Below are positions 2,058-34,267 of a stretch of 64,000 nt of DNA, piece by piece. Under the pieces are notes generated by a model. It worked only from the letters and a program-made list of their open reading frames with translations. It had not been told where the DNA came from and did no database searches. Source of the stretch: Klebsormidium nitens (lineage: Eukaryota > Plantae > Klebsormidiophyceae); contig DF236956.1 of assembly GCA_000708835.1 (NCBI GenBank), positions 1 to 64,000 on the forward strand, read 5' to 3'. Both the position numbers and the translations under genes were made by a program. Position 1 is the stretch's first letter. Each line of letters opens with the position of its first letter.

Positions 2058-2564
2058 CTATTTCCAATGATCGAAAAGTTTCAGACTCTCGGAATAGTTG
2101 ATTGTTTTTCCTTCACCCCCCCTCGCATTGGAGCGGAATTTCTCAATTTCCTCGGTTGGACGAAAACTTAATGGCATGTCGGGGTTGCGCCGGAGAAATT
2201 GCGTTTCAGTGCGTTGGCGGGAGTATTTCTTCTCTACGCGTTTGCGTTCGCGTTTCTTAGTGACGGTGGCGGGTTCAGGGCTAGGTAGCTTACGATGTAC
2301 CTTTTTGCGCCTTGCGGCTTTTGCTTGAGCTTGATCATGTAGCTTATTTTCGGTTATTTCCATGTCAAATTCAAATTGTTCTTCCTTATCTTGTTTTTCA
2401 ATTTCCCGCGCTCGGTCATCTTTGATGTGAGTTGGCAAAGGGTTTTCGGAGGCAATGTCCTTAGAACTTGCGGGACTTGACCCGCGAGATGAGTATGCAT
2501 TGGAGATTTGATGACGTTGCTTGTATTCTTTCCATAGCTCCTTCTTAACTGTTGCTACTATCTT
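2058..2564 (-). CDS. Basic/charged ORF overlapping the gag 3' end in the +1 frame; not a recognisable pol
   Basis: The frame is open from 2564 to the stop at 2058 (KIVATVKKELWKEYKQRHQ...KLFDHWK*) and overlaps the last 20 nt of gag. No D(S/T)G protease, RT or integrase motif is seen. Confidence 0.5.
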   Translation of the reverse strand, partial: KIVATVKKELWKEYKQRHQISNAYSSRGSSPASSKDIASENPLPTHIKDDRAREIEKQDKEEQFEFDMEITENKLHDQAQAKAARRKKVHRKLPSPEPATVTKKRERKRVEKKYSRQRTETQFLRRNPDMPLSFRPTEEIEKFRSNARGGEGKTINYSESLKLFDHWK

Positions 2565-3972
2565 TTATTCCTCGATTGCTCCTTCGGCTATGTGTTGCGG
2601 CGGAGCTTCGAGTTGTTGGGTTTCGTTGCCGGGTGGCTAATTCCGGATGTAAGTGCACACATTGGGATGAGTCATGAGTGTTGAGCCGATGATATGTGCA
2701 CCATGGCTTGCCGGGAATGCGTTGATTGATGGGTCCATTGGCAACGGGCTTAGTTGGGCATTGAGCGGCTTGGTGCCCAACTTGGCCGCACCGAAAGCAT
2801 GGTCCGGGTTGAAATGAAGTGGGAGTGTTTTGTGCGGTTTTAGCACTCGTTTTATTAGTAGGCACCCTACAAGTATGGGCCGAATGGCCTAATCGTCCAC
2901 AATTTGTACATCTTGAAACCCCTCTTATTTTGGGTCTAGTGTCGCGTTTGGGATGGGTGGTACTAGTAGAACTATTATTATTAATAACCTTAGGATTCAA
3001 CAATCGTTCTTGGTTTATTACTTTCTCAAGCTTCTCAGCTTCAGCTCTTATTAGTTCTACGGTCCATGTACTAATATCCTCGTATTGAAACTGTAATTTA
3101 GTTCTTAACTTGGATTGTATACTCCATGGCAATGCGTTGAGTAGCTTCTCAGCCGCTTGCGTTTGAGGTTGCTTTAAATCTAATGCTAACTTAGACATAC
3201 GCTGACTAGCTGTTGTAATAGACTCATTGTCTTCAACCTTGAAATCTCCATATGCTTGAATCTTCGCCGCCGAGTCCTTTGGGTACGCCTGCAAAAGTCG
3301 AGCCCAAAGTTCAGTGACCGGGTCTCCTAAGAAGTTAGTAACTTTAGGAGGTTCAATTGGCAAGGTTGGCCTAGCATTAGTTCCTCGTTCTTCAACCGTT
3401 TGTGCATCCCAAGCCGTGATAGCTTGTTGCGCAGTTGCTTTGTCTCTGAGATAATTTGATTGCAACGACTCATTGTGTGTGGCTAACTCTTCTTCTTTTT
3501 CGGTTAGCAAAGTGAGATAAGTATCATGAGCTGCCCCACCGGTCTTTGACATAATTACGTGGAATTTGTCGGTGGTTGTTAGCCTATCAAAACCGGCTTG
3601 CAACTTATGAGTGGCTTCCCATGCGGCGTATGTAGACCGCAAATTGTCTAAAGTGACAGAGGATTTAGGTTCTCCCGTGAACTTTTGACTAAACGAATCA
3701 AGTTCCTTAAGCGCCATTGTGAAAGTGGTGGCGGCTTCGGAGTCCGCAGTGTCTAAGCCTTCGGATATGGTTGAGGCTTGAGTGATGGCGGATGTCTCAC
3801 CTCGTGTACTTCTAGGTCTCCGATTGGACCACTGGACAAGGGGTAGCCCTGGCCCGTCGGTCCTGTAAGCAGAACGCTGGGCGTAAGGATTCTGAAGATC
3901 GCTGCGGAGATTGTATCCTGCTTCAGAATCTGAGTTGGACATGGATTCTCTGATTTTTGAAAGGATGTCCAA
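2545..3972 (-). mobile_element. gag: Retrotransposon Gag-like ORF (475 aa) with zinc knuckles
   Basis: Intronless AT-richer ORF with two CX2CX4HX4C knuckles (CTNCGRLGHSAHTC, CFRCGQVGHQAAQC) and a CX2HX4HX4C variant (CTYHRLNTHDSSQC). Confidence 0.85.
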
Positions 3973-4579
3973 AGTAACTGTCCACTGATTGGACTTTTGG
4001 CAGACTGTCTGCCCTAGCTTGTCTTTCCAAGCTACGAAAAATGTTCGGATCCTACTGCAGGCTTTTAATAAGGCTGCCAGCAGGGACTACTTTCCAGCAC
4101 TGTCCTTCCTTTGACCTTCCAACGTACGCTGAAAGGGATGATGCGGACTGACGATGGCTGTCACCTGTAACTATGGTGTCTACTGTATAACTACTGGGGT
4201 CTTATCTAATCCGAACGCAGGGGGTGGGTACTCTCCCCCTGGGCTTGCCAGTTGCGAATGTCCTTCCAAGATTCCCTCTTCTGGACAGACGCCTAGTGAG
4301 CTAACTGGACTCTATCTGCTGTTACACACAGGCTCTGACAATTTCAGAGCTTCAATGTCCAGACGGACCTGACAAAGGGTTACGGCAATGTCAGGGGCAA
4401 ACCACAAAATCCTTGTCCAGTGGGGTGATTTCCACTGAGACAAGAGACGACACTTGCTTGTTCAAGCAATGCCTCTGGTCCTGGTACCTGCGCAGTCGAC
4501 AAATGGCAGCCGGATGCAATAAAAGAAACACTCTTCAGTCCAACTAATTGTAGCTTCGGGTAATTTGGGCTTAATCCCA

Positions 4580-5345
4580 NNNNNNNNNNNNNNNNNNNNN
4601 NNNNNNNNNNNNNNNNNNNNNNNNNNNNNNNNNNNNNNNNNNNNNNNNNNNNNNNNNNNNNNNNNNNNNNNNNNNNNNNNNNNNNNNNNNNNNNNNNNNN
4701 NNNNNNNNNNNNNNNNNNNNNNNNNNNNNNNNNNNNNNNNNNNNNNNNNNNNNNNNNNNNNNNNNNNNNNNNNNNNNNNNNNNNNNNNNNNNNNNNNNNN
4801 NNNNNNNNNNNNNNNNNNNNNNNNNNNNNNNNNNNNNNNNNNNNNNNNNNNNNNNNNNNNNNNNNNNNNNNNNNNNNNNNNNNNNNNNNNNNNNNNNNNN
4901 NNNNNNNNNNNNNNNNNNNNNNNNNNNNNNNNNNNNNNNNNNNNNNNNNNNNNNNNNNNNNNNNNNNNNNNNNNNNNNNNNNNNNNNNNNNNNNNNNNNN
5001 NNNNNNNNNNNNNNNNNNNNNNNNNNNNNNNNNNNNNNNNNNNNNNNNNNNNNNNNNNNNNNNNNNNNNNNNNNNNNNNNNNNNNNNNNNNNNNNNNNNN
5101 NNNNNNNNNNNNNNNNNNNNNNNNNNNNNNNNNNNNNNNNNNNNNNNNNNNNNNNNNNNNNNNNNNNNNNNNNNNNNNNNNNNNNNNNNNNNNNNNNNNN
5201 NNNNNNNNNNNNNNNNNNNNNNNNNNNNNNNNNNNNNNNNNNNNNNNNNNNNNNNNNNNNNNNNNNNNNNNNNNNNNNNNNNNNNNNNNNNNNNNNNNNN
5301 NNNNNNNNNNNNNNNNNNNNNNNNNNNNNNNNNNNNNNNNNNNNN
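4580..5345. other. Assembly gap (766 N)
   Basis: Run of N. Confidence 1.
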
Positions 5346-6044
5346 CTCACAACCAGCTCGAAGCTGGGTTACGTCCGGCGGGAACGTTCGAAAACGTACC
5401 CGGTTTCAATCGTTGGAACCTTCCGTGCAATAATTGGATTGTGGATAACATTCTGGACCAATGGATGTCCAGCACGATGTGACTGGTCCACAGCCAATGC
5501 GTGTCGAGTCTACGAGGTTACGGTTAGGTGCGCTAACTATGTCGGCTTAAGCTAACTTACTTTACTAAGTACTACACGTCATGCCACGCGTCTCATGCTG
5601 ATTCGTTAGGCGACGCGTTACGCCAGCGACGCGCTACGTTGTGACACGCGATCGATCGGACTCGGAAGCACGCCTGCGATCAGCTCCGGTCCTCGGGGCC
5701 CACAATACTCCAAATCAAACATCATGGACCCTTTCGATTCTTGAAGTGCCCTCGCGAAGTACAAAGGCTTACACATGTGCATACAGTTTGCAGGACGCGA
5801 CTTTACAACAACCTCTTAGAGCAGCTGCCGAGTTAGGTTGGTGCCCGGTTGGTGTATCAGTGATTGCCGTCCCAAAACGTGATATCAATTTCTTGAACAA
5901 CATTCAAGCAATGTTTGCGCATCGGCCGCTGCCTTGCATGCATAGGCACACTCCTCTCTCCACACAATTCACTATGCACAACGACCGTCATTCAACTCGT
6001 GCCCCCGGTTCCATCCTAAACCGTCAACGCCTTCCCTCCCCTCG

Positions 6045-9000
6045 TTACCAAACCGGCGCGTATACCCTGAATTGCCCCCCCGCGTGCAACATTCCGAACA
6101 TGTACAGCAGGCTGTTCGTCAACCGGTTGCTTCCGGTCGCGGGCAGCGCGGAGTTCCACAGCGCCTTGACGAACGCGGTCGCCACGTCATTTGGGGGAAC
6201 CCCGAGCGCGAGCACCGCGTTCATGGCGACCAGGCCGACCCGCTCGTCGGCAACTAGGTTGGGCTGCAGGCTGGTGCCGTCCAGGTCGTAGCTGAGGCCG
6301 TAGTTCTTGACGCCCTCAGCTGTACGAGAGGGTTAAGGAACGGGTCAGTGTCGAGGTAAACGTTGAGGAAAGCGGTGACGAAAGGGAAGAAAGATGTTCC
6401 AGGGACGTGAAGCGCGGACAGCCGTATCGTCGCCTTACGAATGACGATGAAGCTCGATGATCAGCTTAGGACGTAACGGAACGCAAGAGATCTAAGAAAA
6501 GGATGGTCGGAGCGTTAGGTTCTATGAAACGGTGGGTCCGTCCGGAAGATTGGCAACTTGATGGGCTTGCTTCGTTGATTGTTTGGTAAATCCAGATTAA
6601 TGGATCGTTAGGTTTGATGCGAGTGTTGGTCCATCGCCCATCTCACTTATGGGCGAGCTTGAGTGAGACGCCATGTCTCTATGTTGAGGCACCACGTTGG
6701 TATAAGCCCACGAATCGTCTGATGCACGCCGAGAGAACCGCCATGAATTCAAGGACTTGACAGAATCGCAAACGCCTTGACATAAAGACTTCGTCGTACG
6801 GTTCAAGAATGGTTGCCTTATGGCTGACCGCGAGAGCGCATTTGCTACGACAGATCATTTGGATTCAACCAGATGCGTCTGTTTGAAAGAAAGGGTGTTC
6901 GCGCAGCACCCGCCATCTGAAAGCCAAGACGTCACGGAATGACGAAAGACGCAAGCATGACGTCATCGAGGCTCACCGAAGAAGAAGGCGAGCAGCTCCG
7001 AGCAGCGCGTCACCTCCCAGGCGTCCGCTTTCAGCCCGAGCCAGGCCACGTCCAACTGCGCGCGCACAGGATTGATGTCAGCACATATTAAAGCAAACAG
7101 TGTCAGCTTTCCCAGGCGTGGAGCACAAGGCAAGGAATTGACACAGTCCTGTCGGTCGGCAAGGCAACGTCCGTCCGCCTGACTCTGACTTGCGCGCTCA
7201 AATGACGAAATGTTTTCCCAGAGTCGGATGCAACTGAATTTGATCCTCGAACGGGAAGGAAAGGTTCTTCGTCGACCGAGGTGAAGAAGAGGCAAGCATT
7301 ATTCAGCCAGCTTCTGTGGTTCGGCTGCGAGTTCTGCGGTTCTACTCAGGAAAAAAGAAACGGAACGGCATGGAGCAACCTTTACCCGTCTCCAAGAAAA
7401 TTACTCGGAGCATTTTCCTAACAAAGAGAGAGTCGAGCGATAAGACGCTCACGGCTATGTTGGCCCCCGTCTGATAAGCGAGTGGCCCGAACACCGGTTT
7501 GCTGGCGCCCTGTGCCGGCATCGCCGTTCCGTTCAGGTAGCTCAACTCCGGCGGAAGGCCGGAAGCCGTGGAAAACGAGTTCCTGCAATGCAGGACGCCG
7601 TGTTAGGTTCCGCTCGCATCAGGGCCATAGAGTCTCATGTCAGTAGAAATCGCATTCAGGGTAAAAGATGACCGCCTCAAGAAACGACCATCTGCACCGA
7701 CCTGCGAATGTGAGCCGTTGTGAGTCTGGCCTTGGAGTAAGAGTTTAAACCTTCCTCTTTTGGCCAAATGCTCGGGAGTTGATCTGGAGCCGGTGACCCG
7801 CCTAAAAGTCTCCGGTTGCTGTCTAAGCTCACTGCCAGATTGCAGTCTGAGGCCTTAGAGACTGGAATCAATCAGTACTTGGTTTTGCCCAAGGAACGCA
7901 CGAATCACAGCTCTCGCAATCATGGTTCTTTCTCGTCAGTCATGGATTACCCAGACTTCTCGCCTTTGTAAGACATTTCGTCAGCTAAAAGTTTAAATCC
8001 GACATTCTCATACGATTGGTTCGCCTGGTAGGAGAACAGGACTCCGCAGTCCCGATCCTAAGTTTCACTTTTCGGAATGCAGAGTCAGAATTCTAAAGGC
8101 GGGGCGGCTAATTCAAATCCTTTTTGGAAGTCCTCTTCAAGAGCGAGACAATATTTTCTGGCAGGGTTTGTCATGACGTAGCTTCGCCGTTTCCTAGTAT
8201 CTAAATTGCACCGAGAGAATGTCTCAGTGAATGTCAGAGAATGTCAGAGAATGTCAGACGCCGGTTAGACGCACCAACGACAGTCAGAACTCTCACGCTC
8301 TCAGAACACTCCAATTTGCATCGAAGGCCGGAATCTCACTTCAGGAAGTCTCTGCTGCTTTTTGAGACCAACGCCAAGAACCGGTTCTTCCCCCCGCCGA
8401 ACCGTCCGGGCACCCATCGGGACCAGAGGTCGTAAAACACGGGCGTCTGGTAAGCGGTCGCCGTGTACTGGGAACTGCAAGCGGGAATTGCGGGGCTGTG
8501 TGAGTCACTAATCGCGGTTTGGATCTTAAGAAGTATGATTGAGACGAGTCGAGAGTGGAGAATCAAAAGCAAGGAAGCCATGTGCGGAAAAGAACGTTGC
8601 AAGGAGAGTTTCTTGGTCGCTTTCAGTATGAAATTGCCATCTCCACTCCCTTGCCGAGCTCCTTGTACCGTGATCCTTGACACAGAAATGTGCGGAACGT
8701 TCCTAGGCAGAATCCATGTAATCTAAAGCAGTCACGCTTACGTCAAAAGCGCTATTACCTAGCCCAGTAGATTGACCCACATTTAAGTGTTTGCAAATCT
8801 CTTCAGGTTCGGCGACACGCGAAGATTGTGTCTGTTGGGAAGCGCACAGAAGAATAGATTCATAGATAAGACGACGGAAAACGGGGGCGCGTACCCGGCC
8901 GCGGTCGGCTTGTAGGTCACGAGGTTTGGGGTTTGGGACGCGAACATGCTGGTCTCGGGCGTCGCGCTGCCGACGATCCCCGCGATCTGTTCGCGGTACA

Positions 9001-11450
9001 GCATGTTGCTCAGGATATTCTGCGCCCACCGGCGGTAGTCGCCGGACGCGTCCGGACCTGCAGGTTTGAGGATGTGGTTAGTCTTAACCTGATGTTTTTG
9101 CTGTACGTTTGGGGACTTCGTAAGGCTGCTCGCGGAACAGCATGCTGCTCAGAATGTTCTGGGCGCACCGGCGGCAGTCGCCGGACGCGTCCGGACCTGC
9201 AGGGTCAGGAATCAGATTAGGGTGTTAACCCATTATTCAGTGCGTGCCGTCTTCTGGGTTGATTGAAGATGGTTTCGGGCCAATCAGCTGCAGTTGAGAA
9301 GCGAATGGGCCTGCAGGTTACATGCTCGAGAGGGTTAACCGCAACGAACCACGTTTGGTTCGTTAATTGAAGGAGATCAGCCCTGGAGGGTCAAGCAAAC
9401 AGTACCGGTTTGATAGTGGAAAAGTTGGGCTTGGAAATCTGGAACGGAGGCATCCAAGGAGGCATCTGGGCCTACACGGCGAAGGACTCCGGTCGAATCC
9501 AAGCGAGTATCGAGGTTGCTGAAACGACAGGCTTATTTGACCTGTTTTTTTCTATATTGTCACAGATTCCGACCGGATTCTTGTTGCATAGAGAAGGTGA
9601 AATTGCGTTGCGAAATGGGTCACGGCGTTAAACACCGGGAAAGCGCGCAGCGCACCTGTAATCTGCCACCGTCCCGCCGCGAAGAGGAGTGACGTCACGA
9701 AGTACTCTTCCGCCAGCGGAGTCGGAACTCCGTCGACGACCGCCCCGGACTTGGTCATCTGCAGGGAGGCAGAGGAACCGTTCCGCTTGAGGGCCCAGAG
9801 GCGGAACCAGGAGCAATTGAAGGAGCACGAACTAGGAAAAGCTTTGACGATTTTCCGACAATTACGGAACGGAGCTCTCGGCAGCTCCGCCGGAAAGACC
9901 GAAGCAAGTTGTGGTCGGAAGGGACCCTCGCTGCTTACGAAGAAGTGAGCGATACCCTATTCGGAACACCGTTCCGCGGAATGGGCTAGGAAACGGAAAC
10001 CGGAAGCCGGAAAAGGAACTAGTGCCCACCGTGGATGCGAAGAAGCCGGCGTGCTGATTGGGCGGCTGGATCATCATGTTCGCGCGCGTCCAGCCCCACA
10101 GCTGGTCAAACTGCTTCCGCGCGCTGCAAAACGGAACGGAACGGGGCGGAACGCGTCGGTCAACGTTTCGGAAAGCAAGGAGCTGCTTTTTGACCTGAGC
10201 CCGGGCTGTGGCGGCTTTTAAAAACCCTGCAAGGGGCGCTTTCTGAAAAGCTGAGTCGTAAGCGTGATAGAAAGTGGAGAATTAGATTCCTCCTTGCATT
10301 CCAAAACGCAGCCGTGTCCCAACATCGTTTCTCGCGCATGCACGAGCATCTTTCCTTTCGAAATCAAAAGTAGAGAGCAGCACAAGCTGCAAGATTTTCA
10401 GGACGTACGTCCCCCCGATAAACTCCTCGCTGTAGAAGCTGACAGAAGAATGTATTCACACAGAAAGTGTTCCGCCCGGCCCTACCCCATTTGCAGAGCA
10501 AACATCATGCCGTAGCTCATCCCAAGTGACGTCACGTAGCCCGTCACGGGGTCCTGGATGACTGCTGACGTGTCGTCCACCTGGAAGAACAGCCGCGTGG
10601 CGGGGCCGCCCAGAAACGTGGCGTTGTACAGGCCGTCGATCTTGGGCTGCACCAGGGTGGGGTCCTGCGGGGCGGGGGAAGACAACCGGGGTATTTCAGT
10701 ATTAGCTGAAAAACCGCAAGTCTTTTGTCTCTTGTGGCTCATGTGATGTCTCTTCATGTATAGTAAGCTCCTCGCCTAACACTAAAACCGTAACCCTCAA
10801 ATACACCCGCTCCGCACCCGTACCCAAACTAAACCCCCCAAACTAACCCCACACGTCCCAGGGCTGCTTGGCTTACTTTCTCAAAAGCTTATTTTACCTA
10901 AAAATGAAGTCTGCTGATGTGGGTCTCTTGACAAGCGAGAAGAGAGTCATGAAGAAGCAAGCTTTCTGATCAAACCTGACCGGGAAGTCTCCTTCTGAAA
11001 CAACTAAAGACTGGCCAATTGTCGAAGAAGTTTTCGGCGTGTTCTGGAAGTTCCCAGTGGTCGAACACGCGCAGACTGTTCAAAAGCATGTCCAGATCCT
11101 CTGCCCTTTGAGAAATTCGCTTTGTGAAATCTGATCAGACTATTTAAGCCGCTCTATTGGAAACGGTTTCACTGCTTGAAAAGAGTCCGGTTCCCCTTCT
11201 ATACTTACTGGACATTGGCAAGGGCTAAGGTGGGAGCTTAGAGAGCGCAACAATCTGTTGCAGCTCCAACTCACAACTCCCGTCCCCTTCAAATTTAGGT
11301 TCCGTCTTCCTTGTCTATTTACAATCAACGAGCAAAGGCCTTACTTATAGCTGAATACAGAAAGCGGAGAAATGATAGGAGCTCACGATTCCGGCTTCCT
11401 GGAAGAGGTTCCGGTACTGCCCGGTTCCGAAGGCGCCGTAGACGAAGGGC
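6045..11450 (-). other. GH8-like (alpha/alpha)6 domain exons (13-21), Rex/xylanase-like, catalytic residues substituted
   Basis: Collinear GH8 blocks: GAFGTGQYRNLFQEAG, TSLGMSYGMM, FDQLWGW, PTPLAEEYFVTSLLFAAGRW, TAYQTPVFYDLW, SGLPPE, LAYQTGANIALDVAW, GLVAMNA, FVKALWN, LLYMFGMLHAGGQFRVY. Confidence 0.85.
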
Positions 11451-14400
11451 GGCTGCAGAACTTTGCCCATGACGGACATAAAGATCATGCCAAAGATGAC
11501 CGCACCAGTAACCATCATCATTAACGGCATCTTGTAAGCCCTGCAAGAGAAAAATTTCGCACGTTGGAATTAACCGCGCCGTTAACTATCATTATCAAAA
11601 GGCACTTTGTACTCCTGCGAGGGGCGAATCTGACGTTGGATGACTCAAACGGTTTTCTTCCAATAGAATCTGCTTTTGAATAGCCGGCACTTTCCAAGGG
11701 GAGTGAATACCAGAACTATTTTGTCCTCAATAAGTGAGCCGCTTTGAAATTTGTAGGCGACAAGTCAGGTATGTGCGAATGCTGATTCATATGAAACACC
11801 CGGAGACCGATTCCGGACATTTTTCTGGTCTGCTCTTGCCGGCACCTACAAAGAACACCTTGCGCTACGTGAACCGTTGATCCCGCAGCAAGACCCATCG
11901 GACGGCCAGATCGGACCCATATGTAATTTTCTCACCATGTGGGCAGTCGGTTGATCTCCGCGAGCGTGCAGCGCGTTGTGGGCCAAAGATTGACCAGCAC
12001 GAACAATGCGAACGTCAGCGACCCGGCAACGCTGAACCCGCTGCGCTTTGGAGTCGTGATCTGCAGAAGCGAGAAGAGTTTTCAGTCTTTGGGAGCCTAA
12101 TGAACTTAATGTGCTGGGTGTCCGAGTGTGAGGTCGCTTGATATCGGCTGAAAGACACAACTCTGTAACTTCCATAAATGCAACATTTTCTCTTGCGTTG
12201 AGTTTCGACCCATATCAGAGGAGGCACTCTGAGTCAAGGCCCGATGAGAAGGCAGTCCCCTTTGTTATGAAAGACTCTCATCACGAATGACCAAGGAAAA
12301 CGGTCATTGTAGACGGAAGCAGAAACGAACCGGGATCCAATAAGAACGAATCAGACGTTGTTGAAGGCGCACACAGCGACCCCTAACCTGTAAAGGAATC
12401 CATATGGAGTGAACGGAACCGGAATACAACGCATCCTCACCTCGATGAAGAGGTTGGCGCACGCGACGACCCATGTGTGTCTAAATGAAATCCGTTTGGT
12501 GTAAGCCGAACAAGGAAGGACGCATTCACATCTCGTAGAATCGATTAGCGCACGCGACGACCAAGACTTTCCTTTCAGACAAAGCGGAAACGGAAACAGA
12601 AACGGTCTGCGGAAGGGACGCATTCCCACCTCGACGAAGAGGTTGGCGCACTCTAAAACCAACTCTGTCCATGCGAAGCCGAAACGGAAACGGAATGCGG
12701 AAGGGACGCGTTCCCACCCCGATGAAGAGATTGGCGCACGCGACGACCATGAACTTCCGTTCAGACGGAGCGGAAACGGAAATGGAAACGGAAACGGAAA
12801 CGGAATACGAAAGGGACACATTCCCACCTCGATGAAGAGGTTGGCGCACGCGACGACCATGGCGACGAGCAGCATGATGCAGGCAACTAGGTTGGGCAGC
12901 TCCAGCATGGGCCGGATGCCCGTCTTGTGGTCGCCCCACTTCATCCCGCGGCCGCGCACCGCGATGTACGTCGCCTCGATCGTGCCTGCGGGGTTTTGCC
13001 AGGGTTTTAGATTCAAAAGCTAGCTGTTTACGGGGAGTTCACTATGGATCGAAAATCGATCGGAAACGAAAATGCGTGCGAAAGGCTTCGTTTACTAGGA
13101 GCTGTAGTCGCTTCAATCCGGTCGGCTAAGGATTCTGCCTTGCCAATCATTGGTATTGGACGGGAGAACCACTCGGAGCGGAAGTACTCGATGTCCTGTT
13201 CGAGATGCGAGAACGAGACCTTCTGTTGACTCGGTTATTCTTGAGAACTTGCAATCTGTCGCCATTCCTTTTTTGTCCTCAGATAAGCCAAGCTGCGCGC
13301 AGCTGGAGCAAAAAGGTTGGGTGCACTTGTTCCGCATTTTCTTTAGATGCGGGCAGCATCTTTCGAGAACGAGTGAAGTACGAGCAGAAACAGGGGTTTG
13401 GATACAAAGCTCTGGTGTACCGTGACCTTCTGAAAACTGGGGGCCATAGAAAAAGCATATGCGTCGTCTCACCAACGATGGTGGTCCATGCGAAACCGAA
13501 CCAGGCTTGCATGGACCGGTAGATGTCTTTGGCCACCGTCCCGTTCTTGAAGAGGACGTAACACGCGACGCCAAACATGAAGAGGCGCACCGCCTGCAAC
13601 ACGAACAAAGAGACGTCTATGATAACGTTTGAGCATGTCACATTCCTGCATACGTCCGCAGAAGGACGTCTTCTGGCGGCCGCAGAGCAGTCTTTCCTCT
13701 GCGTAACAAAAGTAATCGCACAGCAAGATAGATATAATATGGAGAGGCAGAATCATTCCAAAGATTCAGAAATTCGAGGTAGAACCGAAGAAGGAGGGGT
13801 TCCAACGCAAGCCAGCTGACTCAGCTGTTCTGAGGAAAGTTTCTTGATCTTCATAATCAATCAAAAAGGAGATTGTCACCGAGAATCTGACGCGATCAGT
13901 CGTTTTGCACAGCTGCCTTACCTGGTAGCATGCGAGAGTGATGACCAGGATCGCCCCCGTCGAGAACTTGCCCCCGATCGCAAAGAACTTGAGCGGTGAC
14001 ACGTCACCCACGCAGTAAATGATGGCCATGACGTACATTGCCACCGCCTCGAGGGCCCCAAGCGGGTACAGCGTCTGCGGAGGGATACGGCGTGAGGCTT
14101 GTGGGCGATAAAATCCGTACCCAGATTCGATCGAATTCGGTAGGGACACCCTTGGGGCATTAAGCGCCTAATTGTTTATTGGACACAAGGTGCTGTCCAG
14201 GTGTCGCCGTAGTGATTCTTAAGCGGATTTTGGCTTCTCTTTTTCAAAGACATGAACCCCATATTACTATATTTGGATTGGCCACAGAGCCCATGCGACC
14301 AGCCTATCTGTTTTTCTTTTGGATTATTCAGCTTGTTTGGCACAAGAGCAAACGCATGACAAGCTTTAGCCTCAGAGGGCGCGAGGATCCATTATCATTT

Positions 14401-17400
14401 TCACTGCACAGGTGACATGCACAAGAAATTCTTGCAGTCTTTCTACTTCGGGCGTCATCAAAAGGGTCAAAACCACACTCATAAGCCAAGGTTCCTTTCT
14501 GGGTATGGTTGCAAACGGGCATCGCGTATGCACCATGTCGAAGAAGATGATGGTGTGGAAGATCCGCAGGATCGTGCTCTTCCGCCGCGCGTCGCGGAAA
14601 TGGTGCCCCGTGTCCTCCGGACAGATGGGCTTCGCCGCCTCCTTCGGTGCGTACCGAGCCAACGTCAGCTTCTTGTCGGCCTGTACGGAACAAAGTCCCT
14701 GATTTACTGTGTGGTCAACGCACCAAGCGCGGGCTTCTTTTCAACACCTCGGCATAGAGGTGCTGATTCAGCTTGTATTAGGTGCACAAGAGTCCGCCTC
14801 TGATCGACCTGTTTAAAGGAGGCTCGCTAGCGCCTCGTGATGAGTTTAGGCCAGGAATACCTTGCTAGATTTATTTCGCTGCTTTTATCACCGCTTCATT
14901 CTACAGGACAAGAGAAAAGGAAGAGCCCTGACGCCTTGCGAGAGCATCCTTTGGAAATTTTTGTCAAGGAAAAAGGAAGAGGCCACACGAAGAAGGAAAG
15001 AACGTGAAGGTGAAAGACAGAGGTAGCGCAGTGCCTGATTGTGATGCTTCTGAATCATTTTATCGGACACTTTCTGCTAAAGCGTCTGTCCAGCTGAAAG
15101 TCCTTTAAAATTTCTTAGGGCAGGAAACCCCCAGACTCTAAAGGTGGGAGCGGTAGAAAAACCAAAGCGACTCTCCTTGGACGCCTCACCTGTTGCCGCA
15201 GCGGCGGGTTGAGAAACCGCCGCGAGATGCCGAGCCAGGTGCGTCCATACTCTAGCCAGAACATCTGGACCGACCTGCGGGACAAGGACTGAGAATTGTC
15301 GAGGAGCTGACGCCAAACGAGGGCTGGACTCACATGAGCTTCAGGCCAAGACGAGTTATATCCAAAGCTCACTTCCTTCCTTGTAGTTCCCGCTCTCGTC
15401 TTACTGGACCTGTGTGATCGCCTACGCAGAACTGCGAGAAGCCATAAGTTTGGTCCAATGAGCCTATTCCCCCCTATTCCTTTCAAACGTACTCTCGACT
15501 CAGACTCTTCGAGGAGTTGCTTCTGTTGGTGAACCCCCTCATCCGATGTCACTCTGTTTTCCTGCCGCTTAAACGGAGTCGGTGCAAGCTCCTCCATCCA
15601 GTCCCAAACTATTGAAATTTCCTCGTCTACGGGACAAGCAATATTTGCCAATGCTCCGAAAACTCACTCTTAACCCATTTCTTGACTCACCCGATGACCC
15701 ATCGCTTCCGCTCGTCCATGGTCTCCCCGACCGTCTCGCGCGCGTGCCCCGACGCTAGGTTGATGTTCAGATACGCGCCCTTCCAGCCGAAGCTGTGCAG
15801 CTTGTTGGCCGTCGCCGCGTCCTCCGTCAGGCAGCCGTAGATGAAGCCCAGGCCGTCATCAAGGGCTGGAAATGAGAGTTGGTAATTAGCCAGTGATGTT
15901 GATCCGGATTTCAGCCGAAGCTGTGCAGCTCATTGTCCGTCGCCGCGCCCTCCTCGTTAGGCAGCCATTGATGAAGCCCAAGCCGTCATCAAGGGCTGGA
16001 AATGGGAGTTAGTATTCAGGCGCTGATAGTGATTGATTTTAAGCCGAAGCTGTGCAGCTCATTGTCGGTCGCCGCGTCCTCCTCGTTAGGCAGCCATAGA
16101 TGAAGCCCAGGCCGTCATCAAGGGCTGGAAATGAGAGTTAGTGTTCAGGCGCTGATATTCATCGAATTTTCAGTCGAAGCTGTGCAGTTTGTTGGCCGTG
16201 GGTGCCTCTTCGGTCAGGCAGACGTAGATGAAGCCCAGGCCGTCATCGAGGGCTGAGAATGAAAAGTTGCAATTGAGTTTGATTGAAGTCTACCTTCGTC
16301 CAGAGTTGATATTGATGCGCACGTGGCTGATAAAGTGCACACAGTTTCTGCTTTGTTAACAGGTCAATAAATGGAGCCTGATAGGATCATCTGCAGATCT
16401 CCGTTGAGCAGTAAGTAGTAGGTCGAGCTGAGAACCTTTTAAAATAGAAGGCAGGGACTAAGTTTGTGATCGTTAGTCAGGCTTAAATCTGGGCCGACTG
16501 CTAGATATTTGTAAGTAGGGAAAGACGAGGCTAGTCTGCCCGACCTCAGCCATGCTTATTTGCATCCGCGGTCGATCATTTTCAAGTGGAACATGCAGTC
16601 TGGCAGATGACGTCACGTTTTCCGTGCCTTACCTGGCTTGAAGAAGACCGCGTTCGTTCCGGCGAACGACGCCATACCGATGCCGTCCCTTCCGGCCTGG
16701 ATGCTGGAGAAGAAGACTCCGTTGCTCTGGTACAGCGGATCGTCGGAACCCTGCGACTCCTCGATGTTGCTGAACGTCTGGGGGGTCTGAACGAAGCCGA
16801 CCTGGGGGGGGTGGAAGAGCGGCGTGAGAAACGCTACTCAACTTTCATACTTCGGGGGTTTCAAGGACCCTGATTCAACTCAAATGCATTCACAGAAGGT
16901 AGAAAAGGAATGAGCCGTTTGTCTCCAAGTGGGCTGTGAAGAGTCGTCTCGATTCGCAAAGAAGGGCGCTGCCCTGTTTTGGATGTGCCACGCAGGGGCT
17001 AAGAACCAACGCACAAATACTTCATAAGAGCGAAACTTGGGTCGTATGCACTCCCTTGAGCACTCTTTTCAGCGGCCGACGTCACGCATGACGTCAGCGT
17101 GACGTATCTCACCTTCCAGTCGGGCAGCCATGCCTCCTTTTCGACGTCGTACTGGTAGAAGAGCGGCATGATGCGCTGCAAAAAGTCCGGCTTGGGCTCC
17201 ATGTCGACGTCGAAGAAGGCCAGGAACTGGGCGGACGTGCCTGCGTTCGACGTCGAAGATCCAAATCACGCTTGCTGTCACTTGAGCCAATCCGCTTGGA
17301 GGATGCTGCTACTGCGAATCAGGCGGATGGGCTGTGCAGATTGCCGGCCCAGATAACAATTGCGGCGTCTGCTTCAAGGGGTGCAGATTGTATTCCGCGC

Positions 17401-20400
17401 GAGAAAAAGGTAAATAATATGCCGTGCTTTAAAGTTCACACGAAAGAGACTTTTGGGGTCCCCTTACTTCCATGACCATAATAGGTCAGCTTTTGAGAAG
17501 AAGCAGAAGCAACCACAAAGCGAGCTTTCGGTATGTGCAAGTATAGGACCAGGCAACCTCGGCTTATCCGCATGGAATGAGCGCCCAAACCAACTTTTCA
17601 ACACCAATCTAAAAGCTCGGCTTACCGGCGTTGTAAATGGCGTTCTCCAGATTCCCCGTCTTGAAGTGGCTCTCCTTGCCCTTCATCCGGCTAATGATGC
17701 TCACTTTCGGAAGCCTTTTTTTCGGGTCCACGAAATTCACAATTACCATGCCCCCCGGCGCGGTGTGCCGTCGGGGCACCAAGTGCCCGGGGATCTTTAT
17801 CCGGTTAGGCTTTAACCCTTCCAAAACCTTGATGACCATGGACTCGAGCTCCGCCCCGAGCGTCGAGACGCCGTACGCGCCGTTGGCGCGCTTGCCGAGG
17901 TACCCGTCGTCCAGGATCTGCGGAAACCAGCGTGGTTAAGGAACGGGTTTACGGGTAGCTTTGGTTTCAGCTTCGGATTGGGGAGGGGTTTGCACACACT
18001 TTTTGGTTTGTTTATGCGGTAGGTTTGTGGCCAGTGGGATGTAGCTTGTGAGGTGGGTTAACAGGAAGCTTAGAAGCGAACGAGGTACCCGTCGTCCAGG
18101 ATCTGCGGGAAAACCAGCGTGGTTTAGGACCGGGTTTGTGAGTTGGTTCTTGGTGTGGTGTTTGGGCGGTCTTGAAGGTTCTGCGGTAAGTTTGTGGGCA
18201 GGTTCATGTAGGTTGTGAGGTGGGGATTACGGGCAGGTTAGACGCGAACAAGATACCTGCACGGAACTCGGCGTGGTTAGCCAACGGGTTTAAAGGCAGT
18301 CTTGAGTTGGTAAAGGGGTGAGTCTGTGCCAAGTCGTGCATTGGTTATGAGCTCGGCAGCTTGGATGTTTACGAGGCACTCATCGTCCAGAATACGAAGG
18401 AAGTAAAGGAGTTTTAGGGCTGGCTTAAGGAGTGTGTTTCTGAGCAGTTTGGCAAAAGTGTCAAAAACTTGGGTTGCCTCTGTTAAGGCTTGCCTGCAAA
18501 CCGTATCGGCCACGTCGCGCGTCTCAAGCACAAGTGATATTTTAATCAGAATTCTGGTAAACAGTCGCTTTCAATCGTGAACTAGAACGAGTAGCCTAGC
18601 AAGAAAGAAAAGCATGGGGTCCCCTCCTTCAAGGCCGCTCGTATCGTCCCTACTGGACAAAAACTCACGGCAAGCTCCGTGTGACCTTTAAACCACATTC
18701 ACGAAACGTCCAGACTACAGCCCTTGGCAACGCCAAGGTGTCGATTCTACGGTCCAAGTCGAGAGGCCCTGTTTGAGAAGTCTGCCCACCTTGATGTGCA
18801 GTTTGTGCTTGGGGTAGTCCATCTGCAGGGCCTTCTCGAGCGGGCCCCGCAGCTCTTCCACGGGCTCCAAGTAGTGGCAGAAGCAGATGTCAACCTCGGG
18901 CCAATCGTCCTTCTCAAATGTGGGGTACATCCCTCTGCAAAGAGCGTATACTGTGTAGTTGTAGAAAAGCTCACTGGTTCGTTACAAATATTTTCTCGTT
19001 GAGGAACCCAGAACACATGACGCCTGGGGATGTAGATCAGCCAACATGCCTGAAGCAAGCTAGTGACCGTCTTTGACTTTCTACAGCACCCTTTCCATAA
19101 TTGCAGGAGGCATGATCTCAGAAGCCAGTTCAAGGTGCTGAAGATTCAACTCGTTTGGGAAAAAATATGTTACTTGCAATACAGCCGCACGCGGGAAGGT
19201 TTTGTCGTATCGTATCGTCTATCGAGAAGCGCATGCGAATCAAGAGAGACTCCTGCATTGAAGTTTCATGGCTGAAGAAACTAGAGAGGGTTCGAAGGGC
19301 GCCCCCCACCTGAGCGTGATATCGTTGCGCTCCGTAGCGTACCAGAAGTTGAAGAAGAAGCAGATCCCGAGCAGCCAGCTTACGAGCTCGCTCACAAAGA
19401 ACATGCTGCTCACAATCACGTTCGCGTATGCGAGTGACAGCGTGTAAAAGTACCACGGACCCAGCACTAGAAACACCAGATACGTTGGCCGGAACACGTA
19501 TTTGATGATCGGCCGAATCGTAGCCCTCGATGCAGTGATCGGCTCGTTGGCCGCCAGCCCGAGCCGCGCCCTTATGTCCTCCGCCGTCGGCTTGCGGGAG
19601 ATGTCGAGGAAAGCTTGCGGCCCGCTCTTTGCGGCCTGGTTGCGGATCTTCGCCGGGTTTATGCCAAAGGGTTGCGGGGTTTTGGCGGGGGCTGCCTGCC
19701 GACCAATCAATGGCAGGGGTGTCGTTTCGGCTGAAGAGTTTTGCCCCCCGTTCGGACTGCCCCTTGGTGGGGGGGTAACGTTTCCTGCGAGTTCAGCCCC
19801 CTGGTCCGAACCTGTGCTTTCGTACGCCACCAGGTGCTGTCCGGGCCAGTCCGAAATGAGCAGCCTCTGAGGACCGTTCTCAACGCCGAGCGGAGACTTC
19901 TTTCCGATCTGGGTGCTCGTTTCTTGCCCAGGACTATACTCCAGTTCGGGCACTTCTCTGATTGTCCCCAGTGCTGCGCTCTGCCGAGAACCGGTTAGGG
20001 GCTGAGACTCCGCCGCCGGTTCCTCATCGTCTGGCTCCGTCACATAGCTTATGGACGACGCCGCCGATGCCGGCGTTTCATTGTGCGGCAGCTCCTGAAC
20101 GACGGGCGATCCCTCCAGGTTAGCCTCTAACCCGGCCCCCTCAATCCCGTTTTCTGCTCGCCCATTTTCCTCCGAATCAGCTCCAGCTTTGGCCCCGTAA
20201 AATCCATTCCCGGCATGGCCCGTCGTTTTCGGACCTCCCTCGCGCACGACGGATGTCCGCACGCGCACCGGTCGCAGCTTGGACAGGTCAAAGCCGTCCG
20301 GTTCCTCCTCGTTGCGCGGTGTGAATACGGGCGTGTTTGAGGAAGAGTAAATGTGGTCGTCTTCCGCGGGCGGAGAGCGGAGCACTCGGTTGGTGTCCAA

Positions 20401-20460
20401 GCGCGGGGGCCCGTGGCCCTCGCTCTGCTTCTTGCTGATCAGACTCGAGAGGAAGCCCAT
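6045..20460 (-). CDS. Cellulose-synthase-like GT2 fused to a C-terminal GH8-like domain; 21 exons, 1386 aa
   Basis: Exons (high to low): 20460-19310, 18934-18790, 17917-17626, 17240-17113, 16801-16633, 15865-15691, 15274-15190, 14680-14534, 14074-13922, 13593-13473, 12985-12828, 12060-11936, 11540-11387, 10664-10486, 10123-10030, 9758-9656, 9057-8895, 8474-8340, 7582-7453, 7055-6977, 6319-6045. All introns are GT-AG with matching phases; the sum is 4161 nt (1387 codons, no internal stop). GT2 motifs in order: PEVD..HYLEP, DYP, ILDDG, KTGN, DVD, QTPQ, GTN, TED, ERKRW. About 7 predicted TM helices, then the GH8 domain. Confidence 0.9.
9130..9203 (-). repeat. Intronic copy of the exon-17 acceptor plus the exon 5' end
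   Basis: Near copy of 8991-9063 (…GCCGGACGCGTCCGGACCTGCAGG) with an intact CAG acceptor. Confidence 0.9.
12352..12815 (-). repeat. About five intronic copies of the exon-11 3' end and donor, interleaved with a (GGAAAC)n-like microsatellite
   Basis: Motif CCCACCTCGATGAAGAGGTTGGCGCACGCGACGACC recurs near 12432, 12522, 12620 and 12708, with a degenerate copy near 12352. Confidence 0.85.
14440..14505 (-). pseudogene. nad3: Short mitochondrial nad3-derived insertion (NUMT) in intron 8 of the GT2-GH8 gene
   Basis: 14442-14483 (-) encodes YECGFDPFDDARSR, the conserved plant/algal Nad3 loop. It is AT-rich and flanked by non-nad3 sequence. Confidence 0.75.
15913..16262 (-). repeat. Three tandem pseudo-exon copies (~130-bp period) of the exon-6 acceptor and TED-coding segment
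   Basis: Copies at ~15913-16010, 16042-16140 and 16172-16262 of GCCGAAGCTGTGCAGC…ATGAAGCCCAGGCCGTCATCAAGGGCTG, all with an intact YAG acceptor. Confidence 0.9.
18083..18400 (-). repeat. Intronic copies of the exon-3 acceptor (ILDDG-coding start)
   Basis: GAGGTACCCGTCGTCCAGGATCTGCGG at 17897 and 18083; degenerate copies near 18250 and 18370-18395. Confidence 0.8.
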
Positions 20461-20840
20461 CTTGTTTGAGGCTTTACCAGCTCTTTTGCCAAGGCCCGTA
20501 CATTGCAGAATGTATGAGGAGGTTCTAGCACAGCAGCTCCTTTGCTAGGGAAGGAACACTAGCAAAAGGCCATTGAGTACGGGCAGTGTTTTACCAGCTT
20601 CCTTCCTTTTGTTTTCGGCAGATTCATGCAGAAATGCGGCTATTCCACCAGCTCTCCTTCTTAAGGCACACCCGTCCGAGTAAAACGACCTGCGTTATTC
20701 CCAGGACTTCCGTGCAATTTGTCGCTGCGAAAGTTGGAGCTGAGCTCTCAGTACTCGCGAAGAGCCTGCAAGACTGTAAAGTCACACCGAGTGGCTGGAG
20801 CTACCTCCGCCTGGCCTGGCAGGGTCTGCAGCTGCGGTGC

Positions 20841-32053: not shown

Positions 32054-34267
32054 ATGGATTCCTTGAAGAACCTCGCACATAAGGCCAAGGACAAGCTGAC
32101 CCCCGGCTCGCGCAGCAGTGACGAGCAGGGAGACTATGATAAGCAGCAGGGCACGGTGAGTTGCTTCGAACCCTTCATGTCCCATTCGTATCATGCTCTT
32201 TATGTTTGCTCAATGACCATGTCATGCATCCAAGAATCCCCAAATAAGGGGGTTCACTGGTGACAGCGCAACGCAATTGACGAAATCAATCTGTGTGGTG
32301 ATTCCTTTTTCAGACTCCTTTCAAGTTTAATCTCTGTTGGTGGCATTGGGAGCTGTTGATTGGCCTCAAGCGAAGGGCGACTGATATGAACGTCCAGATT
32401 CACAATCTGCCGACTGTCTTGGATCATGATGCATGCAGCACTCAATCTAAGACTTTCTAAGAAGTCACAGCTCCATCTAATTGGACATACGAGAGTCTTT
32501 TCAGCCCTTCGCTATGGAGCAATGCTGAATGCTTGACCTTCAGCATTTGCAACCGCCCCTTGCATTCATTTCGAAGAGCTTTTATTATGCTTGAGGAAGC
32601 CTTGAGGTCCAAGTCCCTCTTTGATGCAACTGAAAGAAGAAGGGTAACTCCTTCAGTTCTTAGTCTGGTCTCTCACTTGAATACGAGGAAGATGGGATTA
32701 ACATTATTGATTCTCTGATTTGCTCTACAATTGTGGGACTGCACAAGTGATCCCCATTGTAAGAGTATGAAGGTGCTGTTTCCTGCTTGATCATTGAAAA
32801 TGTGAAGTCCTGGCAGCCAGCTTTGCCAAAGACTGACAAACATTTTCCAGCAAAGGGAACAACAGATCGATCCTTTTTGCAAGTACTCGCATTTGTGCTC
32901 ACTTAATTTTGAATCACATTGCCTGAATTCAAACGTTCTTGAAAGTTCAGAACATATGTCATGACTTTTCTTCCATCTTTTCTAACTTCCAGCACCCATC
33001 AATGTGAAACTTTGCATGAAACTTTGCGGCAGGACCGTGATGACATCATCTCAAACTCTGTTGCATACAATGCAACAGCTTATTCACCAAAGTGTACTGA
33101 CTTTGAGTTCCTTCACAAGACTGCATCCTGGCATAAGATCCAGGCAACAGAGTGACTGCTTGGGCCTTTACTCCATTGGCTCCTAACTTTTCTTTGACGC
33201 AGCCTCAATAAATTCCACTTGTCTCGCCCACCCAATGAAATCAATGGAGATAACTCTCAAACTTTTGTTTTGCCAATCTCCGGATAAGACCCTATCTTGC
33301 TCTACTTGTGCAGGTTCCAACTGCTTGAACAGTAACCAGAGTCTGAGAGCTAGGTTTTGAGCTCACTAGTCTCTGAGGTCTGAAATACCGAGACATTGCT
33401 TCTATTTCAACTTTGAATTCATGACTCTGTCCTTGATACATTGACATCTAAACCAGTTTTTGTTTGTCGCAGGGCACTGGATATGGCAGCACCAACACTG
33501 GGTACCAGGGCACCCGCACCGACAGCGACACTGGCTATGGCAGCAAGACGACCGGTTATGGCGGTGACGACACCGGCTATGGCAGCAAGACAACCGGCTA
33601 TGCCGGCAGTGACGACACCGGTTATGGCAGCAAGACAACTGGCTATGGCGGCAGTGATGACTCCGCTTATGGCAAAAAGACCACCGGCTATGGCGGTGAC
33701 GACACCACGGCCACCGGTTATGGCGGCAGGACTACCGGCTCTGGTGGCGACGACACGACCGGTTATGGCGGCAGGACCACAGGTTATGGTGCTGACACCG
33801 ACGTTGGAGTCGGTGGCCGAGGCAGGAACGTCGACATCGACTCTGACATCGGCATCCCGTCAAAGTACGCAGGGTCCGACTCCGTGACTGGCGGCGACGA
33901 CACCGGCAGCGGCTATGGCACCAGGAAGACCGGCTATGGGGGCGACGACAACACCGACACCGGCTATGGCAGCAAGAAGACCGGTTATGGCGGCAGTGAC
34001 GACACCGGCTATGGCAGCAAGGGCTCTGGATACGGGGGCGATGACAACACTGGCACTGGTTATGGCGGCAGGACCACCGCTTATGGTGCTGACACTGAGA
34101 CCGGCCGTAGCGGCCGCGGCAATGCTGACGTCGATTCTGACATTGGCATCCCCGAGAAGTATGGAGGGTCTGACACTGTTCCTGGGGCCCAGTATGGTGG
34201 CAGTGGAGGCAGGCGGGGAGCGGGGGGATATGGTCGTGATGACGACACCACCGGTGATGACTATTGA
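32054..34267 (+). CDS. Gly/Thr/Asp-rich hydrophilin, dehydrin/LEA-like; 2 exons, 298 aa
   Basis: Exons 32054-32155 and 33473-34267 (phase 0). N-terminal LAHKAKDKLTPG resembles the dehydrin K-segment core; many TGYG(S/G)(K/R/D) repeats; no Cys or Trp. Confidence 0.75.

Follow-up and report, generated by a model that had tools for sequence, protein, structure and literature searches.

A synthase-fused GH8 domain with leucine at its three catalytic positions in Klebsormidium nitens

What can a polysaccharide synthase gain from a glycosidase domain which should no longer be able to cut? The question is raised by a minus-strand gene within a 64,000-nucleotide stretch of the alga Klebsormidium nitens (assembly GCA_000708835.1, contig DF236956.1, positions 1 to 64,000; hereafter the window), which joins a BcsA-like glycosyltransferase family 2 (GT2) synthase to a C-terminal domain of glycoside hydrolase family 8 (GH8). 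As far as can be judged from sequence, this domain is a complete GH8 unit of the bacterial Rex/xylanase type and forms the C-terminal 410 residues of the synthase. Its three catalytic carboxylates read leucine, and the same leucines are found in orthologues in which the domain is under purifying selection. We regard it as a predicted pseudo-enzyme that is maintained and not in decay, and its job as very likely a non-hydrolytic one.

The GH8 domain and its catalytic positions

The host contig is eukaryotic and alga-like, with a GC content of about 0.53, and the minus strand of the window carries short coding blocks interrupted by introns. Three studies, with four public runs between them, supplied RNA contigs that were placed on positions 5950-11900. 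These contigs omit eight segments, every end of which reads GT..AG on the minus strand, and as such a pattern is possible only from spliced RNA, the gene is transcribed and spliced. Every junction of the nine exons of the GH8 part (11540 down to 6045) is present in the spliced RNA contigs. Between the RNA contigs of the three studies and the window not a single letter differs, so that the three leucine codons cannot be assembly errors. Joined, the nine exons give one open frame composed of a hydrophobic helix, approximately 410 residues and the stop codon TAA at 6045-6047, below which the 3' untranslated region extends. In the direction of transcription, the features of this part of the gene are:

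11387-11540, minus strand: exon with the transmembrane helix MPLMMMVTGAVIFGMIFMSVMG, followed by the GH8 start GQYRNLF (RNA junctions; hydropathy peak 2.21)
10486-10664, minus strand: GH8 exon with VTSLGMSYGMM, leucine codon CTT (10524-10526) at the position of the general-acid Glu (RNA, alignment, profile)
10030-10123, minus strand: GH8 exon with FDQLWGW and, further on, GFFAST, with Ser in place of the Trp of the family motif FAW (RNA, alignment)
9656-9758, minus strand: GH8 exon with PTPLAEEYF, leucine codon CTG (9714-9716) at the position of the conserved Asp (RNA, alignment)
9093-9203, minus strand: intronic pseudo-exon which duplicates, in degenerate form, the 5' portion of exon 8895-9057 (direct repeat, 83% identity)
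8895-9057, minus strand: GH8 exon with GPDASGDYRRWAQNIL (RNA, orthologue identity)
8340-8474, minus strand: GH8 exon with TATAYQTP, the invariant Tyr retained and the preceding family DPS replaced by ATA (RNA, alignment)
7453-7582, minus strand: GH8 exon with FGPLAYQTGANIA, leucine codon CTC (7480-7482) at the position of the general-base Asp, and Gln for the Arg three residues on
6977-7055, minus strand: GH8 exon with LDVAWLGLKADAWEV, in which D.AW keeps its invariant Asp and Trp (RNA, alignment)
6045-6319, minus strand: last GH8 exon, RLTN for RYYD and Glu (6243-6245) for the family His (RNA, alignment)

The pseudo-exon is bypassed in the RNA, in which the junction runs from 9057 to 9656.

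The assignment to GH8 is carried by the spliced domain as a whole. In a BLASTP search it recovered 74 full-length library proteins (best E value 7e-77, about 400 residues aligned), with identities of 31-39% for the best approximately fifty and down to 27% for the weakest. A profile of 402 positions built from these 74 homologues aligned with the domain from position 14 to 394 (E = 3e-104), and all seven homologues that were scanned (7/7) match Pfam PF01270. A Pfam scan of the individual exons gave no GH8 match, the pieces being too short; three single exons, on the other hand, match solved GH8 enzymes, namely Rex8A, Bacillus Rex ('xylanase Y'), 6G00 and a cold-adapted xylanase, with E values of 1e-5 to 1e-6, and the exon with the third motif (7453-7582) alone has no match in the PDB. 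The nearest library homologue, P0018, is 39% identical to the domain and itself matches solved Rex/xylanase GH8 structures at 1e-89 to 1e-107. As homologues of solved GH8 enzymes are 31-39% identical to it along their entire length, the domain should adopt the (alpha/alpha)6 barrel fold. In the nearest homologues, GH8 is accompanied by modules of a kind typical for enzymes that bacteria secrete (Big_2, CBM6/35, PA14 or dockerin). In the family tree the algal clade stands on a long stem of 1.63 substitutions per site, its sister being weakly supported.

Within this well-aligned domain, the minus-strand codons CTT (10524-10526, in YVTSLGMSY), CTG (9714-9716, in VPTPLAEEY) and CTC (7480-7482, in VFGPLAYQT) all encode Leu. 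In the 74 full-length homologues the corresponding columns hold Glu in 73/74, Asp in 72/74 and Asp in 73/74, respectively, and the profile built from these homologues gives the same placement. VTSLGMSYGMM aligns with VRSEGMSYGMM of Rex8A, the same Glu of which is Ala in the deposited mutant 6TPP, PTPLAEEYF aligns with PAPDGEEYF of 6G00, and the third column is the Asp that was changed to Asn in the deposited mutant 6G0N. Glu/Asp/Asp is the conserved catalytic set of Rex8A-type GH8 enzymes, that is of the Rex and xylanase types (PMC8417218). None of the three residues by which a GH8 enzyme can be recognized is thus present in the algal domain, neither the acid Glu in (S/T)EG(M/Q)SYG nor the Asp of PAPDGEEYF nor the base Asp in D(A/S)(W/Y)R. 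The Tyr which holds the nucleophilic water (PSYH motif) is kept, as it is in 74/74 homologues.

The replacements extend to the neighbourhood of the lost acids. The domain retains 44 of 60 family-conserved columns (conserved in at least 90% of the homologues), and of the 16 changed ones three are conservative or lie away from the catalytic motifs. Those associated with motifs are E73L; W116S; A130T, D132L and G133A; D211A, P212T and S213A; D285L and R288Q; and Y387L, Y388T and G390S, by which FAW becomes FAS, DPSY becomes ATAY, D..R becomes L..Q and RYY becomes RLT. The Trp column (73/74) has turned into Ser, the Arg column (73/74) into Gln, and the two Tyr columns (73/74 each) into Leu-Thr. 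Some of the changed motifs presumably line the active site, and the replaced Trp, Arg and Tyr-Tyr are, as we take it, residues that contact the sugar or hold it at the cleavage site.

A first-pass annotation, made from the letters of the window, had already placed three leucine codons at the GH8 acid, Asp and base positions, and they are found at exactly the coordinates it gave, the sites of the 6TPP and 6G0N mutations coinciding with the positions it named. The alignment also bears out its reading of FAW to FAS and RYYD to RLTN and of the Tyr of TAYQTP as kept, and the open frame and the correctly spliced RNA from three studies agree with its intact nine-exon domain. It had further argued that each exchange of an acid for Leu needs more than one nucleotide substitution, which follows from the genetic code, as GAR to CTN or TTR and GAY to CTN require at least two.

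Orthologues and selection on the domain

Whether such a domain is kept or merely persists can be judged from relatives. An exhaustive library search with the last exon gave one close relative, a cluster of an 88-residue fragment with 82% identity, which led to two contigs of one metagenome (L001 and L002) that hold the whole orthologous domain in the same nine exons. All other matches of this search are canonical GH8 with RYYD kept, bacterial-looking where checked, and a GT2 domain was found in 0/150 of its matches. A word-index search with the acid-motif exon had as its sole match a near-identical 68-residue fragment from another assembly, which likewise reads VTSLG. A metagenome scan with the exon of the transmembrane helix and GH8 start gave no relative, and the DNA pattern for GMSYGMMFA recovered from metagenomes only five GH8 genes, intronless and with Glu/Asp/Asp intact.

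All three leucines recur in both orthologues, two of them encoded by codons that differ synonymously from those of the window (CTT versus TTG and CTG versus CTC). Of the 16 changes at family-conserved columns, 14 are present in identical form in both orthologues. Over 429 codons the synonymous divergence from the orthologues (dS) is about 0.77 or more and the nonsynonymous divergence (dN) about 0.09, which gives an omega (dN/dS) of 0.11-0.12 (bootstrap 0.08-0.16) by the Nei-Gojobori and LWL85 methods and of 0.05 by maximum likelihood. The bases of the exons are fully alignable to the orthologues with 76-87% identity, whereas less than 5% of intron bases align. The most conserved exon is the one with the transmembrane helix (11387-11540), which has 96% amino-acid identity to L001 and L002.

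As the catalytic acids are gone and purifying selection nevertheless persists, the domain would serve a function other than hydrolysis. This is what the first-pass annotation had proposed, in favour of selection for a non-hydrolytic role and against decay, and with omega at 0.05-0.12, the leucines kept and exons but not introns alignable, the proposal stands. Orthologues which retain the acids would have spoken against it; the two that were found lack them and share the leucines.

Fusion to a synthase, position in the membrane and introns

Upstream of the GH8 exons, the gene encodes a synthase:

15866-20460, minus strand: remaining part of the gene, a large first coding exon and exons of the GT2 core (open frames; delimited as one block)
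15691-15865 (TED, ERKRW), 15190-15274, 14534-14680, 13922-14074, 13473-13593, 12828-12985 and 11936-12060, minus strand: seven upstream exons in the same frame as the GH8 part (GT..AG)

The seven exons (11936..15865) encode the last part of a BcsA-like GT2 core together with the membrane helices that follow it C-terminally, and in the PDB the TED exon has its best match in BcsA of Rhodobacter (4e-7). From the exon with TED and ERKRW to the stop codon there is one open frame of 757 residues across 15 GT..AG introns. An RNA contig of 1917 nucleotides spans the first two GH8 exons and reaches 1554 nucleotides further upstream, with a loose end at 11541, and the first 30 letters of this extension are the 3' end of exon 11936-12060. 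For the exons at 15865 and below, a BcsA-like GT2 and a hydrolase-like domain are thus found in one frame and transcript. In L001 and L002, too, the GH8 exons are preceded on the same strand by synthase membrane exons, and the fusion is therefore shared. In the part further upstream, the first coding exon lies in the open frame 19243-20544, with a start MGFLSS... near 20460 (an estimated coordinate), and the GT2 core exons include one with DVD within 17002-17265 and one with QTPQ within 16616-16837; at the level of single exons, the matches of 15866..20460 to Pfam Glycos_transf_2 and Cellulose_synt are weak and stay under the curated cut-offs.

While TED is intact, the QxxRW motif of GT2 reads ERKRW, with Glu in the place where QRGRW of BcsA (4HG6/4P00) has its first Gln. 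We take ERKRW to be unusual for a processive beta-glycan synthase.

In a hydropathy plot approximately five hydrophobic stretches follow the GT2 core, the first two, which are poorly separated, being read as TM5 and TM6 of BcsA and the last standing directly before the GH8 domain. BcsA has four membrane helices after the GT2 core and a cytosolic C-terminus. With one additional helix directly before it, the GH8 domain should, by this analogy, lie outside the cell.

Besides these features, the introns of the gene and its surroundings show some peculiarities. Intron 10124-10485 is covered by low-depth RNA contigs of two runs (window 10095-10503), in which the junction at 10486 is crossed unspliced; this could be retention of a single intron or pre-mRNA, and read-through would end the frame early. 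In introns of the gene, the neighbouring exon-intron junction is also repeated in tandem as degenerate copies (15781-16274, 12398-12861, 8987-9220 and 18012-18356). Four such copies of about 130 nucleotides precede the TED exon, exon 12828-12985 is followed by another four and exon 8895-9057 is preceded by two, and similar partial exon copies occur in orthologue L001 at 2536-2580, 5948-6004 and 9767-9829. Such copies may have been left behind when introns arose or lengthened through tandem duplication in a gene that came from bacteria. Just downstream of the 3' end of the gene, a run of N (4580-5345) is adjoined by a 513-residue open frame on the minus strand (2548-4086) with two motifs like CCHC zinc knuckles, which resembles the gag of retroelements, and on the plus strand an open frame at 33452-34264 consists of TGYGSK-like repeats rich in Gly and Tyr.

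Possible roles, alternatives and known systems

A mechanism that accommodates these observations would start from the general acid, the general base and the third carboxylate, with the replacement of which by Leu the acid/base hydrolysis of the family would no longer be possible. The extra transmembrane helix would place the barrel extracellularly, beside the polymer exit of the synthase, where it would bind the beta-glucan chain as it emerges or assist in its handling or, alternatively, dock the synthase to wall polymers or partner synthases. From this we infer a loss of hydrolytic activity and, outside the membrane, a binding or guiding of the nascent glucan. The whole picture of an outward-facing, non-cutting synthase module which handles the emerging chain or docks to wall polymers or partner synthases is in our view probable, and our confidence is higher in the part of it which says that the domain is dead and maintained. 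The specific roles of a guide, a crystallisation aid or a scaffold are speculation.

Several points weigh against this picture. The sampling comprises a single lineage, namely the window and a pair of related contigs with little divergence between them. ERKRW makes the product and the activity of the synthase itself uncertain, and the sole grounds for the membrane topology are the analogy with BcsA and the hydropathy plot. With the presumed sugar-holding residues of the cleft also lost, sugar binding itself could be weakened, and an acid from elsewhere may enter the cleft, for example the conserved Glu (6243-6245) that replaces the family His. Activity, binding and localisation are predictions from sequence.

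A narrower version of the same picture sees in the leucine-lined, charge-free cleft a purpose-built groove for the nascent glucan leaving the synthase pore, which would control chain release, alignment or crystallisation. We put this forward tentatively, as a guess which is rather unlikely to hold in this form. If true, it would mean, together with the GH6 domain of tunicates described below, that cellulase folds have repeatedly been recruited to synthases for handling the chain and not for cutting it, and it would touch on the old puzzle of the 'cellulase' requirement of cellulose synthesis (BcsZ, KORRIGAN).

Of the explanations that depart further from chain handling, the one which survives best is that of a pure protein scaffold, in which the domain binds no carbohydrate and oligomerises synthases, anchors a partner or aids folding or trafficking of the synthase. 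The Trp, the Arg and the Tyr-Tyr which we take to be sugar contacts have given way to small or aliphatic residues, the leucines render the centre of the cleft hydrophobic, and the most conserved part, at 96%, is the exon with the transmembrane helix before the domain, all of which would suit a scaffold. Many family-conserved residues of the cleft region remain, however, such as the Tyr, several Trp and Phe, an Asn and the Asp of D.AW, and dead glycosidase folds that have been studied, for example YKL-40, usually retain glycan binding, which leaves a pure scaffold improbable although worth keeping in mind.

Considerably less probable still is that the domain remains an enzyme, be it through other residues (the new Glu, the EE, the Asp of D.AW) or through other chemistry such as transglycosylation or phosphorolysis. 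It would be in line with this that the water-holding Tyr is kept and that Glu 6243-6245 is found in all three sequences, the window and both orthologues, where 57/74 homologues have His. In Rex, we take this His to contact the sugar that adjoins the point of cleavage, and the Glu is the sole conserved gain of an acid at a position which presumably belongs to the substrate cleft. The acid Glu, in contrast, is as far as known common to all GH8 subfamilies, and its mutation is reported to abolish activity in CelA, Rex and BcsZ. Nor can the remaining acids stand in for the lost ones: that the EE of LAEE might take the catalytic positions had been raised with the first-pass annotation, and by the alignment these two residues are the EE that the family itself carries next to the catalytic Asp (an acid in 100% and 64% of the homologues, respectively), and as both this pair and the Asp of D.AW occur in active enzymes too, they are no substitutes. 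Furthermore, the acid content of the domain is 6.6% as against a family median of 10.9%, other conserved residues that we take to contact the sugar are gone, and what was replaced is the conserved catalytic set of Rex- and xylanase-type GH8 (PMC8417218).

Finally, that the hydrolase part is a functionless relic which drifts within the fused gene is essentially excluded, since, in spite of the loss of three catalytic and several conserved neighbouring residues, the long algal stem branch (1.63 substitutions per site) and introns littered with degenerate exon copies, the nine-exon frame is open and correctly spliced, omega is 0.05-0.12 at a dS of about 0.77 or more, 44/60 conserved columns are retained, the replaced residues are conserved between lineages despite synonymous codon differences, and the exons, unlike the introns, are fully alignable.

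For a maintained, non-cutting module precedents are at hand in two proteins of animals. Tunicate CesA carries a fused GH6 domain which lacks the catalytic Asp and keeps other signature residues, and a bacterial origin with later gain of introns has been proposed for it (PMC7464555). Like the algal gene, it combines a bacterial-type processive GT2 and a C-terminal domain of a cellulase family in one polypeptide, with catalysis lost. It differs in fold and host, GH6 in an animal as compared with GH8 in a streptophyte-like alga, and in the extent of the loss, which in the tunicate domain concerns one catalytic Asp and one of two GH6 signatures, in the algal domain all three carboxylates and several neighbours. 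The algal gene thus has the design of tunicate CesA in a different fold and with an active site that has been dismantled much more completely, and the two fusions look like convergent evolution. In YKL-40 (CHI3L1), the exchange of the catalytic Glu for Leu turns the site of a GH18 chitinase into a chitin-binding site (PMC2717817), so that there, too, a glycosidase fold is kept as a non-enzyme; YKL-40 has, however, an unrelated TIM-barrel fold and is a secreted, soluble animal protein without fusion to a synthase.

Among GH8 proteins, the closest solved relatives are the Rex enzymes and xylanases (Rex8A 6SHY/6TRH, Bacillus halodurans Rex 1WU4, 6G00 and pXyl 1H12), which share domain length and order of motifs with the algal domain. 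They are soluble and bacterial and have Glu/Asp/Asp intact, whereas the algal domain has Leu/Leu/Leu and is membrane-anchored and fused to a synthase. BcsZ resembles it as a GH8 protein whose partner is a BcsA-type cellulose synthase and which acts at the outer face of the membrane, but it is a separate, active periplasmic enzyme and not a fused domain. A captured BcsZ operon partner was also considered as the source of the domain and is disfavoured, since the strong PDB matches of P0018 (E 1e-10 or better) include Rex, xylanases and CelA and no entry named BcsZ.

BcsA-like 'CslP' synthases have been described in streptophyte algae, and the available part of that account makes no mention of a GH8 domain (PMC9915684). 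In our literature searches, neither an algal fusion of GH8 with a cellulose synthase nor a GH8 pseudo-enzyme was found to be described. Cellulose synthesis in bacteria as well as in plants needs a cellulase partner, BcsZ and KORRIGAN, respectively, for reasons that are debated. That a domain fused to a synthase is under strong purifying selection without its catalytic acids suggests that a glycosidase fold beside a synthase is useful without cutting. The algal gene offers a simple system in which to test non-cutting glycosidase domains on synthases, and at the same time a clean example of a bacterial-type domain which has gained eight introns within a eukaryotic gene.

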